Positions 28,801-55,800 of a stretch of 64,000 nucleotides of DNA are shown here, in pieces (within the stretch, counting starts at the first letter, position 1; every line of letters begins with the position of its first letter). The notes under the pieces are model-generated. The model ran no database searches. It had not been told where the DNA came from and was given only the letters and a program-made list of their open reading frames with translations. Made by a program: the position numbers and the translations under genes. Source of the stretch: Octopus bimaculoides (Eukaryota). The DNA lies in assembly GCF_001194135.2 (NCBI RefSeq), contig NC_068992.1, positions 57,596,097 to 57,660,096 of the forward strand, in the 5' to 3' direction.

Positions 28801-31800
28801 NNNNNNNNNNNNNNNNNNNNNNNNNNNNNNNNNNNNNNNNNNNNNNNNNNNNNNNNNNNNNNNNNNNNNNNNNNNNNNNNNNNNNNNNNNNNNNNNNNNN
28901 NNNNNNNNNNNNNNNNNNNNNNNNNNNNNNNNNNNNNNNNNNNNNNNNNNNNNNNNNNNNNNNNNNNNNNNNNNNNNNNNNNNNNNNNNNNNNNNNNNNN
29001 NNNNNNNNNNNNNNNNNNNNNNNNNNNNNNNNNNNNNNNNNNNNNNNNNNNNGTGTGTGTGTGTGTGTGTGTGTGTGTGCATTTATACACACTCTAAGGA
29101 GAAGTGAGCTCAGACATTTTGTCAGGATTCTATTAGTTGCCCTTTTCTTACTGGTTTCAGTGTTTTAGTAGATTCTCTTGAATCCAACACTCAATCTGGT
29201 GAGATTTTTTGTTTGTTTGTTTTAATAAGAAATGGAAAAAAACAAGGAGACTTTGGCATGAAGGGAGCTAACTAAGTCACTAATCAATGTTTTTTTTTTT
29301 TTTTTACACATCAACTCCCTTCATCCTACACTGGGCACACGCACACATACACCAGTCAGGTGTCTGCAGTTTCTATCCTCCAAGTTTCACTCGACATTTT
29401 TATTTGACCTTAGGTGATGGGTCTAAGGTGTTATGCAGCACTAATTGGCTGCACAGCTAACTCTGTAACACATCTACTGTATCAAAGTTGAATTTCTGGA
29501 TCAAAATTCACAGCTAAAAAAAAAAGGTCGGTCGACTTAAGAGGACCAAAAATTCCACCTGAAATGCTGCAAAATTTTGGAAATATAATGATAATGTTTG
29601 AATGTTAACACTACATGTTTATACTATATACTAAACTGAGTTGTATACCAGAAAATACAGCACACCTGTGTTCGTTCATACCTTTAAGATATACTGCAAT
29701 CTGTAGAAAAAACATTCTCAGCATTTCAACAGAGGTTTTATAAAACATAAAACAGATGATATTAATTAATTAATTGGTGAATCGTACCTGAAATTGAGCA
29801 CTGACACTTGGGGGTTGCTTTTTGAAAGGAAACCTTCCACCTCCAATCATAGTACGTGTTGCAATCGTCTTCAACGTCCGGACATCTCTGTAACTCTGAA
29901 GATAAATAACAGGCAAAGATGAGCAACAAAAGAAACTTTAATTGTCACAATATCATTGCAGCGTAAGAACTCCTGTTAATATTAATAAGGAAAAAGATTT
30001 AAAGGAGTTTATTCTTTGACTTGTTTCAGTCATTTGACCGTGACCATGCTAGAGCACAACCTTGAAAGGTTTTAGTCAAACAAATTCACCCCAGGCCTTA
30101 TTTCTTAAGCCTAGGACTTATTCTGTTCATGTTTTTGTCACACTCTGTCATGCTGAATCTCCTTCGGACCTACAATAAGGGTACACGTCTGTGGACTGCT
30201 CAGCCACTTGGATTTTAATTTCATGAGCAGGCTGTTCCACTGATGGGAACAGCTGGAACCCTTGTCAATGTAACCAGTGGAGTGCCATTTATGTATTATA
30301 TACATAATATAAATATGTATTACACATGCAACAATTAAATTATGTATTAAGTACTACATTATGTACTTTTGTTATGCACATGGTCCCCTGATCCATGGAA
30401 AGATTTTCTGGCATGAAACAAGTCCTTGGTGCAGAAAAATGTTAGAGAATTGCTGCTGTAGAGGATACTGCCTTGCCACCTGACTAAAAGATAAAAGTTA
30501 AATATATATATATATAGGTGCAGGAGTGGCTGTGTGGTAAGTAGCTAGCTTACCAACCACATGGTTCTGGGTTCAGTCCCATTGCATGGCACCTTGGGCA
30601 AGTGTCTTCTACTAGAGCCTCGGGCCAACCAAAGCCATGTCAGTGGATTTCATAGACGGAAACTGAAAGAAGCCCGTCGTATATATATATGTATATATAT
30701 GTTTGTGTGTCTGTGTTCGTCCCCACCACCATCACTTGACAACCGATGCTGGTGTGTTTACATCACTGTAACTTAGCGGTTCAGCAAAAGAAAGCGATAG
30801 AATGAGTCCTAGGCTTACAAAGAATAAGTTCTTCAGTCAATTTCTTTGACTAAAGGCAGTGCTCCAGCATGGCTGCAGTCAAATGACTGAAACAAATAAA
30901 AGAATAAAAGAATAGTGGGGGTGGAAACAGAGTAGAGGGAAAATGTAGTAACAGTGCTGATTTTATGGTTTGAGGCATATTAGAAAGAACTTTGGAAGTA
31001 ATGCCATGGAGATGTTTTTAAACAAGTAACAGGGTTTAGAATAATATTGTCAATACAACTATGGACAAACAACTATGGTGGGTTGTTACAAATATACAAG
31101 GGTTTCGTGTTACTAATCCTTGATGACACTGAATACAAAGAGAGAAACAAGAGACAACCGAGTGGAGTGTTGCTTCAAGGTTGCCACGAAGCACTTATGA
31201 AAGTGGAACCAGATCAAATAACAGTGAAATATTCATTTTTTAAGCGAGAGCTCAAGTGTGATACTATAATAGAGTAAATGGATTTGAATTAGTTCAGATT
31301 AGTTTAAATGGTTTTATTTTGGAGAACTGTATCCAAAAGACCATAGGGTTTGGTGCGGGGAGCAACAAAACAAAAACAAACCAACAAACACTGGAACTTG
31401 ATCCTCAAAACTGAAATAGAATGTGGTTACTTAATATCAATTTATCAAGTGCCTAGACACATAAACTCATGAGGTTTTTTTGCTTTTTTACAGAAACCAC
31501 TAATTGCTATTAAGAGAGAAATATCAAGATACAAAAAGAGAAAAAAGTGAAAACCCGAATTCAACAAATTAATTATTTTAATAACGAATTAAAAGTGTCA
31601 GTAATAATAAGTTGTGGCTCTTAGACATGGTGTCTTCTTTAACAGTGCCACATTGTTGCTGCTGTTGTTGTTGTTGTTGTTGTTGCTACTTAACTCCAGG
31701 TCAAACTTTACAAGAGCAGACCTACGATCAAAGACTTCAAAACAACTGACCACCTCATCTTTTTTTTTTTTCCTTTGTCTTTTTTGAATTTTGATCATGA

Positions 31801-52800: not shown

Positions 52801-55800
52801 ACACACACACACACTATCTGTTTACATGACTGCAAAAGTACAGAGAATAAAAGAAAACAGCTGAACGACTGAAATAAATGTCTACAGAGAAGAAATTCTT
52901 CCACCGACTTCCTCAGAACAAATACCACCAATATTCATCACTGGTTTGTTTCATGTGTCTGAAATTACAGCAGCTAATTAAACAAATCTTTAAATACATA
53001 ATTCAATACATCAAGAGACGACTGTGAGATAATTACAGCCAAATAGATAACATATTACAGTGGAACCGCACACCAGACAAAATGCTATGCAGTATTTCTG
53101 CCCGCTTTGCATTCTGAGTTCAAATTCCGCAGAAGTCAACTTGTCCTTTCACCATTTCGGGGTTGATGAAATAAGTACCAGTTGAGCGCTGGGGTTGATT
53201 TAATCGACTAGCCCGCCCCAATTTCAGGCCTTGTGCCTTTAGTAGAAAGGATCGTTACCCTGGAACTTACCTTAATAAATTATCACTAGATAATTTGCAA
53301 CTTTCTCGGTGAGATGTTTCGTTCGTCTTCTTTGGAGGTTTCCTGGATTCTGAGTGATTAAAAAAGAGAAAGAAAAGAATAATTACAACTGACTAATGAT
53401 TATTCATAATCTTAATTAACGAATTTTCCTAATGCATGGAAAAAATTATACTGTAATTGTGGTATGACGTCAGTGTCTGGGGAGGCTGACCGGAAGGGCG
53501 AGTCGACCGGAAGGGCGAGTCGACCGGAAGGGGAAAAAGGGCAGAGGGAGCCTCGATCGGCATTCGTGCCCTTTTTCAAACGGGGCTGTGGTCAGGACAA
53601 GACGTGTTAGGCGACGGTCTAGGTTTGGGAGAAGCAGCTGCTATACCTGGTGTACTTTGGGTCGGGGCAAGCTTCAAGGATCGGATACCGCAAGACGGAC
53701 TCGCAGTCGAGGAAAGGAAAACTGAGGTAAGGCGATTACATCTACTCGTACGCACACACCACAGTAATCATCATCGTCATCATTTAACATTTCCTTTGCA
53801 ATGCTTGCATGGGTCAGACAAAATTTTTTGAGGTAGGTTTCTCTAGTCAGATATCCTTCCTGTTGTCAAACTTCACCTGTTTCCAAGCAAGTTAATATTT
53901 TCCTATGGCTAGCCATAATTTTCATGAAAGACAGGAAACAACCTCACTTGTATGATGATGAAGCTCATTTAATTTCAACCATCATATATCTAGACAAGAG
54001 TACACACAAACACACACATATATATATTATATATGTGTGCAAGACACACATATTATAAATATGTGTGTGTATATATATATACACAGGACAGCAGTGTAAA
54101 GAAGTGCCGATCTCTAACAGTAGAGGGAAGCTGTAGAAGAGGTAGACCCAGGAAGACATGGGACAAATGTTGGGTCTCACAGAGGCAATTACAAATGACC
54201 AGGACCTTTAACAAAATGCTGTGCTTGAGAAGACTCATCAAGTCAATTGAAGTCATAGTCATGGCCGATGCCAGAGTCACGTAACTGGCACCTATGCCAG
54301 TGACACATAAAAAGCACTCATTACACACTTGGAGTAGTTGGCATTAGGAAGGGTATCAAGTCGTAGAAACCATGCCAAATCAGACTGGAACCCAGTGCAG
54401 CTCTCCAGCTTACAAGCTCCAGCAAAACCATCTAACCCATGCCAGCATGGAAAGCAGATGCTAAATGATGATGGTGATATATATATATATATATAATAAA
54501 ACAGACTCTTTCAGTTTTCTCCTACCAAATCCACTCTCAAGGCTTTGGTTGGTCCAAGGTTTATAGTAGAAGATATTTGTCCAAGAAGCTGCAAAGTAGA
54601 ACTGAACCTAAGACCAGCTGTTTGAGAATCAAGCTTCGTAATCACACAACTATACCTTTTGAAAATATATTTTTTTATTTCATTTTATTTATTATTTTTG
54701 GTTGTTGTTGTTGTTGTTGTTGTTGTTGCAGTGAAAATAAAATATGAAAACACGAAGCAACATTCTTAGAAGGAACAGGAGTAAGTAGGAAGGTTGACTA
54801 AGAGAAACAGCATAAAATAACTTACTTCCATTCTGTTGGTATTCTTTACCAGCAGAAATAAAGGCAGCAACACATCTGAAGAAAGCTCTCAGCAATCCCC
54901 ACCGTAAAATAGCGACTGGGTCAACTCCTGAAACATCAATTGATTAAGAAATAAATTACATTCCATACTCAATGGAACGACACATTCAACTCAACAAAAT
55001 AACATGAATAATGTCAATAATTAATAAAACAAAAATCATATTGAAACAAACAGCAGATAACATTGATAAATTAAAACCTTGTAGCAATCAAATTACTCTG
55101 TTGAATGCGATGCTTATTTATTCACCTTGTTTTGAACTAATCCTGCTTTATCTCATAGCTTCGAGATTTTGATGATGTGATTATTTATTTTTAGAATGAT
55201 ATTGCAGCATAGGTATGAAAGGCCAGATCTGGCCAGTTTGAGCATAAAACAGGTGGAATATTTGGCTTGGCTATGGCTGGTTTAAATGATAAAGGGCTAA
55301 TGAAGATTAAGATTAACAAACACAGCAGAGTGGACTCAGTGGTTCAGTGGTTAAGATGCTGACATCTGGGCCACTGAAAAGAGAAACTCTAAGTGATCAT
55401 TCGAACTGCTATAAAATGGCAACAAATCACTCTTCAAAACATACCCGTGTTTCATAAAAACAGCCCAATGAATAATGTAGTTAGTCCTAGATACATTATG
55501 TTGGAATAAAAAGATGGAATGGTTGTAGTAGGAATGCTGTTGATCATAGGTTTGTTCAATCAGATCAACATTGCTTTGAGACTAAGACACAATAGCAATA
55601 ATTTTGGAGTTATTAAACATCTTGCTTCCCGTGGCTCAGTGGTTAGAGCATTGGGCTCACAATCATGAGGTAATGAGTTCAATTCCCAGGCTAGGTTGTG
55701 TGTTGTGTTCTTGAGCAAGACACTTTATTTTACGTTGCTCCAGTTCACTCAGCTGTAGAAATGAGTTGCGATGCCAAGCTGTATCAGCCTTTGCCTTTCC

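Follow-up and report, generated by a model that had tools for sequence, protein, structure and literature searches.

The 64-kb window of the Octopus bimaculoides genome analyzed here (64,000 nucleotides of NCBI RefSeq assembly GCF_001194135.2, contig NC_068992.1, positions 57,596,097 to 57,660,096; all positions given below count from the first letter of this stretch) carries a myosin gene on its minus strand. Judged from its sequence, this myosin belongs to class IX, that is, to the motorised RhoGAPs, and has a large basic insertion in loop 2 of the motor domain. The reading that we favor, with a probability of roughly 0.6, is that six conserved exons, most likely spliced constitutively, encode this insertion and that its extra length comes from a neutral spacer. 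The loop spans 277 amino acids, and comparison with the same exons in other cephalopods indicates that its enlargement is due to the growth of low-complexity sequence within one large exon and not to added exon modules. The window has a GC content of 38% and contains 14 assembly gaps (runs of N).

Exon structure of loop 2

The peptides that delimit the loop, DPVAILRW and PPSVSAQFQ, map to 54922-54899 and 29814-29788, both on the minus strand. An initial annotation of this DNA had proposed that the span between them is built from exons of 102, 79, 63, 444, 40 and 108 nt, with an additional 18-nt microexon. On the minus strand we searched all AG...GT intervals that fit the proposed lengths and phases, and one candidate per length had a strong pyrimidine tract together with a gtaagt-type donor. 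Each of the six exons is preceded by an AG acceptor with a pyrimidine tract, and the donors are gtaagt, gtatgt or gtacga. Joined together they comprise 836 nt, which with one base of the upstream exon give 279 codons open in frame, the loop from DPVAILRW to SAQFQ accounting for 277 aa. The intron phases along the loop are 1, 1, 2, 2, 2, 0 and 0.

The first exon (54826..54927, 102 nt, phase 1-1) encodes the amphipathic segment with which the class IX insertion begins, and the second (53271..53349, 79 nt, phase 1-2) encodes a basic cluster with a net charge of +5. The third (47902..47964, 63 nt, phase 2-2) is the best conserved segment of the loop, and the fourth (43495..43938, 444 nt, phase 2-2) contributes 148 codons with a net charge of 0. 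The fifth exon (34000..34039, 40 nt, phase 2-0, net +5) finishes the motif QVIKKNKC that is begun in the 444-nt exon, the junction falling between QVIK and KNKC, while the sixth (29788..29895, 108 nt, phase 0-0, net +6) encodes the C-terminal end of the loop with a KK pair within the sequence FKKQPPS. Neither the 79-nt nor the 40-nt exon is frame-neutral, and the phase 2-2 boundaries and divisibility by three that had been assigned to the 63- and 444-nt exons are borne out by the joined frame. The loop is bounded by a motor exon directly upstream (56053..56143, DFREKNSDL...KELLG) and another directly downstream (28560..28640, acceptor intact), all exons being on the minus strand.

Two alternative exon forms were rejected. 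An internal GT at 54849-54850 (GCTG/gtaaag) would produce a 78-nt form of the first exon that remains in frame and lacks eight codons; the 102-nt donor was favored because tblastn alignments with insect and vertebrate Myo9 homologs run through AGKEYQQ. The internal GT reads GG in a second cephalopod (locus L001, described below), and so it is probably unused. A 436-nt form of the large exon, using a donor at 43502, breaks the reading frame.

The six-exon chain of the initial annotation therefore stands, since all six exons join in frame and the result is identical to a predicted protein described below, but the microexon could not be located. Sixty in-frame AG...GT 18-mers occur by chance in the three phase-2 introns of the loop; none of these 60 candidates has a counterpart in L001, where the best match showed 6-8 mismatches out of 18, and the NCBI gene model contains no such exon.

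Identity of the gene

A predicted protein, unconventional myosin-IXa-like isoform X6 [Octopus bimaculoides] (XP_014768828.1, hereafter P0121; 1734 aa), was placed on the window at 100% identity as 17 complete GT-AG exons running from 62337 to 3016 on the minus strand. Its loop exon chain is identical to the one described above and is without the 18-nt microexon; the loop 2 exon chain is already present in the public NCBI gene model. An exact look-up of P0121 returned no gene on record. The first residue of P0121 already falls within the motor domain, past the place where the N-terminal RA-like head extension of class IX myosins would lie, and the gene's 5' end is beyond the window.

The domain content of P0121 agrees with the class IX identity that had been proposed. 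It has a Myosin_head domain (PF00063, E = 1.4e-157) in two stretches separated at the loop, followed in the neck and tail by IQ (PF00612), C1 (PF00130) and RhoGAP (PF00620, E = 3.4e-46) domains, of which the C1- and RhoGAP-coding parts fall outside the window. The motor exons align by tblastn to insect and vertebrate Myo9 fragments. Alignments of other myosin classes taken from the PDB end at approximately residue 365-374 of P0121, and because these classes stop aligning at this point the insert was placed at loop 2, as had been proposed for this span. Among PDB structures, none is of a class IX motor that includes loop 2.

The class IX loop 2 insertion has been described as basic, with calmodulin binding at its N-terminal end, and as an actin tether that is needed for processivity (PMC3887004, PMC12884960, PMC8698748); the functional background given in the initial annotation agrees with these reports (PMC3887004, PMC12884960). 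The octopus insertion shares its position in the motor, and the protein its domain architecture, with rat and human Myo9b, human Myo9a and C. elegans Myo IX. It also has the same conserved start (DPVA[IV][LF]RW...AG) and end as other class IX insertions, and like them is basic overall.

Conservation in other cephalopods

To look for relatives of the large exon, its 147-residue peptide was used as a phmmer query against 1.84 billion representative proteins. Three matches were obtained: P0121 itself (100%), P0122 (93 aa, 58%) and P0123 (35% over 38 residues). The last of these lies in a Thr-rich tract of a 2085-aa protein and most likely reflects low complexity. Through P0124, a cluster-mate of P0122, we reached L001, which covers 20.4 kb of a 194-kb ENA contig (ERZ21867824) from a second cephalopod and is free of gaps. 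A third contig, L002, came from Logan ERR14857104, and overall two cephalopod lineages are compared.

A run of 11 exons, beginning at switch II and ending with the exon that follows loop 2, has the same order and orientation in L001 and the window. The L001 loop is encoded by six exons in the same order and with the same phases, and is 235 aa long. The first of these exons (4497-4598, 102 nt) is identical to that of the window at 29 of 34 aa. The second (6209-6296, 88 nt) matches at 10 of 25 aa, with conservation at its 3' end only. The 63-nt exon (6701-6763) is the most conserved piece of the loop, with 89% nucleotide identity, 20 of 21 aa identical and strong splice sites. The fourth exon (10093-10401) is 309 nt long and is identical at 62 of 99 aa, with an additional 53 gap columns, while the 40-nt (17186-17225) and 108-nt (17709-17816) exons are identical at 10 of 14 and 34 of 36 aa, respectively.

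The large exon thus measures 444 nt in the window, 309 nt in L001 and 303 nt in L002, and its length is divisible into whole codons in all three. In its alignable parts, the ratio of nonsynonymous to synonymous substitution rates (dN/dS) comes to 0.23 for the pair L001 and L002 and to 0.10-0.13 when the window is compared with either one; with dS at about 2 the synonymous sites are saturated between species. These low ratios, together with the whole-codon lengths in three species, argue that the large exon is translated and under purifying selection.

Similarity extends beyond the cephalopods at the C-terminal end of the loop. A BLASTP alignment to insect Myo9 starts in the 3' end of the 444-nt exon and continues unbroken across the 40-nt and 108-nt exons. 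The motif QVI[K/M]KNK[C/S], which is split between its fourth and fifth residues by the junction of the 444- and 40-nt exons, is common to cephalopod and insect Myo9; the cephalopod form QVI[K/M]KNKC matches the insect QIVMKNKS, and the 40-nt exon aligns with the insect sequence 'IVMKNKSFRPRER'. Neither the N-terminal nor the middle part of the loop showed significant similarity to insect or vertebrate loops (E > 1).

We considered whether the 444-nt reading frame might be an artefact of gene modeling, an intronic low-complexity open reading frame (ORF) behind which the true loop is much shorter. The center of the exon is low in complexity and repeat-like, and microsatellites elsewhere in the window also give long open frames. 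Word-index protein searches found no homologue of the loop: a query of motor plus loop gave no cephalopod protein and none longer than 603 aa, and the loop alone returned nothing. These negatives are uninformative, as the same searches missed P0121 and P0122, both of which are in the collection. On the other side, the ends and splice sites of the exon are conserved in two other genomes, with length differences in whole codons and dN/dS of 0.10-0.23; its 3' end is continuous with the motif common to insect Myo9; and without its phase-2 boundaries the 79-nt and 40-nt exons would not be connected in frame. We regard an artefact as extremely improbable, and this explanation as largely refuted.

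Assembly gaps

Assembly gaps in the loop introns could in principle conceal further exons, in which case the loop would be longer than modeled or differently built. Seven gaps totaling approximately 2.1 kb lie in the introns of loop 2, and a phase-matched exon divisible by three would leave the frame undisturbed. Against this, the frame closes without an extra exon, and the gap-free L001 locus joins the same six exons in frame with no others, the only long ORFs in its introns being ones that resemble reverse transcriptase. Most of the gaps are, moreover, flanked by microsatellites or homopolymer runs, namely (TA)n, (GT)n, (GGA)n, poly-G or poly-A. Hidden exons are accordingly judged very unlikely.

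All of the assembly gaps in the window are intronic and their overlap with exons is 0. Two come close to splice sites: the gap at 28660-29052 is 20 nt from the acceptor at 28640, and that at 34085-34657 is 46 nt upstream of the acceptor at 34039; both acceptors are intact. Since 11 exons match the order and orientation of the gap-free L001 locus, the scaffold joins across the gaps are colinear at the level of exons. A number of the gaps, including those at 3796, 14896, 19732, 29052, 34657, 36273-36677, 46455 and 51629-51966, have the look of unresolved simple repeats. The last of these is within the range of the loop and was missing from the program-made list.

Length, charge and composition of the loop

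The initial annotation had described the loop as greatly enlarged, and it is longer than every comparator that we retrieved. Measured over the same DPV...FQ span, the octopus loop is 277 aa, as against 113-214 aa in four insect and vertebrate fragments (Plutella, 159 aa; Diploptera, 214 aa; Tachysurus MYO9B, 144 aa; and an Aquarana fragment, 113 aa). This makes it approximately 1.2 times as long as the loop of the second cephalopod and 1.3-2.5 times as long as the others, the molluscan comparators being cephalopods only. It also exceeds the 110-145 aa reported for class IX inserts (PMC8698748). For the equivalent span of human MYO9B the initial annotation had given roughly 155 aa, beside which the 144 aa of the Tachysurus (fish) fragment can be set. 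In C. elegans Myo IX (HUM-7), the insert comprises residues 713-820 and has an isoelectric point (pI) of 10.8 (PMC3887004).

The charge of the octopus loop is unevenly distributed. The whole loop has a pI of 9.8 and a net charge of +18, all of which is supplied by the five smaller exons (129 aa, net +18, pI 10.4), and the basic clusters of the 79-, 40- and 108-nt exons together account for +16. The product of the 444-nt exon, by contrast, has a net charge of 0 and a pI of 7.3, contains 11 His residues, and consists to 51% of Ser, Thr, Pro, Ala and Asn. About half of the octopus loop (148 aa) is therefore without net charge, whereas the class IX insertions in the literature have been called highly basic. 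No similarity to insect and vertebrate loops could be detected in the middle of the loop. The QVI.KNK motif is shared with insect Myo9.

Within the 444-nt exon the ends are conserved and the center is variable. The center (43584..43802, minus strand, codons 46-118) is rich in Thr, Ser, Ala, Pro and His. It carries most of the 45 codons that O. bimaculoides has beyond L001, and the gaps in its alignment with L001 and L002 fall there as well. Tandem Repeats Finder identified an imperfect trinucleotide repeat at 43742-43793 (period 3, 17 copies, 71% matches) that encodes a Thr/Ala run, and sequence entropy reaches its minimum, 1.9-2.6 bits, in the center of the exon. A structure prediction of the 444-nt exon product with AlphaFold2 gave a mean predicted local distance difference test score (pLDDT) of 45.9 and no secondary structure, with the lowest values (34-40) in the center; the underlying alignment held three sequences only, which makes the low pLDDT a weak sign of disorder. 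The center is probably disordered. Given how this exon differs in length between the window (444 nt) and the relatives (309 and 303 nt), the enlargement of the loop is accounted for by growth inside this exon.

These properties suggest how the parts of the loop might work together. The amphipathic segment of the 102-nt exon would be the counterpart of the region that binds calmodulin at the beginning of the insertion in other Myo9 proteins, and the basic clusters of the 79-, 40- and 108-nt exons would make the loop an electrostatic tether to actin. The center of the 444-nt exon may separate these clusters as a flexible spacer, one that would grow and shrink by in-frame insertions and deletions and by trinucleotide slippage. 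If this reading is right, the octopus has a well-behaved ortholog of a known motor in which the loop is longer and partly low-complexity, and this protein could serve as a natural length variant with which to separate the effects of tether length from those of charge on single-headed processivity.

Frame neutrality and splicing of the loop exons

The loop had been described in the initial annotation as modular and as a combinatorial splicing cassette, in which the 63- and 444-nt exons (and the microexon) would be included in varying combinations to tune loop length, and thereby actin affinity or processivity, according to tissue. This description rests on exon lengths divisible by three, which proved to be a trait of the gene as a whole. 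Eleven of the 17 complete exons in the window are multiples of three (binomial p = 0.008 against an expectation of one third), and the proportion in the loop (4/6) does not differ from that outside of it (7/11; Fisher p = 1). The symmetric exons include core motor exons of 135, 81, 111, 123 and 150 nt. Because symmetric exons are the majority gene-wide, exon symmetry is no sign of a cassette design, and the frame-neutral lengths in the loop would reflect this general excess.

Several observations nonetheless fit regulated inclusion. Besides sharing phase 2-2 and divisibility by three, the two exons include one, the 444-nt exon, whose donor is weak on the exon side (TAA/gtatgt here and CAT/gtaggt in L001), and skipping of this exon would leave a loop of canonical size (129 aa, +18). 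The designation 'isoform X6' means that NCBI predicts at least six isoforms, and loop 2 cassette exons that alter motor activity are established in non-muscle myosin II (PMC10480317). Set against these points, the 63-nt exon is the part of the loop with the highest conservation and has strong splice sites, and the conserved QVI[K/M]KNK motif straddles the junction of the 444- and 40-nt exons. No microexon was confirmed, and the sole predicted product that we retrieved, P0121, contains both exons. Between the window and L001 the introns show no detectable similarity and no conserved intronic block. At the 63- and 444-nt exons specifically, no conserved intron flank was found, identity dropping to 20-40% beyond 10-20 nt, and this decay is the same as at constitutive motor exons. 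A literature search found no paper on class IX loop 2 splicing. Taken together, we think regulated skipping of the 63- or 444-nt exon rather unlikely, whether as a full combinatorial system or for either exon singly, and constitutive splicing of the six loop exons the most likely arrangement given their pattern of conservation.

Some points count against the favored reading of a constitutively spliced loop with a neutral spacer. Constitutive splicing is something that we infer from conservation, and the name of the predicted isoform implies that this gene has six or more of them. The 129-aa, +18 loop that would remain after skipping of the 444-nt exon is plausible as a functional variant. At the divergence of the two lineages compared, regulatory elements could exist in the introns and be too short to detect. 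Lastly, a low pLDDT derived from an alignment of three sequences is weak evidence that the proposed spacer is disordered.

The short inserts of non-muscle myosin II offer a useful comparison. In that class the A2 and B2 inserts of loop 2 are 21 aa (63 nt) and the C2 insert is 33 aa, and the length and charge of loop 2 affect actin-activated activity (PMC10480317). Both systems have short frame-neutral exons in loop 2, but the shared length of 63 nt is a coincidence; in sequence the octopus exons do not resemble the class II inserts, and they are conserved in the ortholog. In non-muscle myosin II both inclusion and skipping have been demonstrated and are tissue-specific, while the octopus exons are known from the genome and from one predicted product. 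If transcripts were to show that the 444- or the 63-nt exon is skipped in a regulated way, the splice regulation of loop 2 would extend from class II to class IX. It is possible to speculate, as an unlikely combination, that cephalopod Myo9 carries a neutral, disordered spacer of 100-150 residues that evolves rapidly in length and that the 444-nt exon is skipped in some tissues, giving two tether reaches (277 and 129 aa, both +18). Such skipping, if true, would be the first loop 2 splice switch in a class IX myosin.

An observation on vertebrate sequences bears on the same region. Among the MYO9B proteins P0004, P0005, P0009 and P0010, some carry a segment of approximately 29 aa ('LDFSFD...FE..I..') in loop 2, and P0005 is without it. 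P0009 runs on into sequence unrelated to myosin. The segment could be an alternative loop 2 exon or could result from errors in the gene models.

Repetitive elements and other intronic features

The intron between the 444- and 40-nt exons contains, at 35017-35847 on the minus strand, three adjoining frame-shifted ORFs that weakly resemble a decayed DNA-transposon transposase; one of them has a match to HTH_23 below the Pfam cut-off. In L001, the intron between the 309- and 40-nt exons contains overlapping ORFs of 181 and 276 aa at 12140-13409 on the plus strand, with a match to RVT_1 that is likewise below the cut-off. This is probably a non-LTR (long terminal repeat) retroelement in the intron of the ortholog.

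A dispersed repeat of approximately 150-200 nt, which looks like a short interspersed nuclear element, has many intronic copies in the window. Copies are found at 16171-16342, 22847-23012, 25972-26138, 30516-30700, 32003-32180, 54295-54495, 57802-57960 and 63378-63553. In the tail-coding part of the gene, a 19.3-kb intron lies between the exon that ends at 24126 and the next one, at 4805-4617, and it holds three assembly gaps together with long (CA)n/(TA)n tracts.

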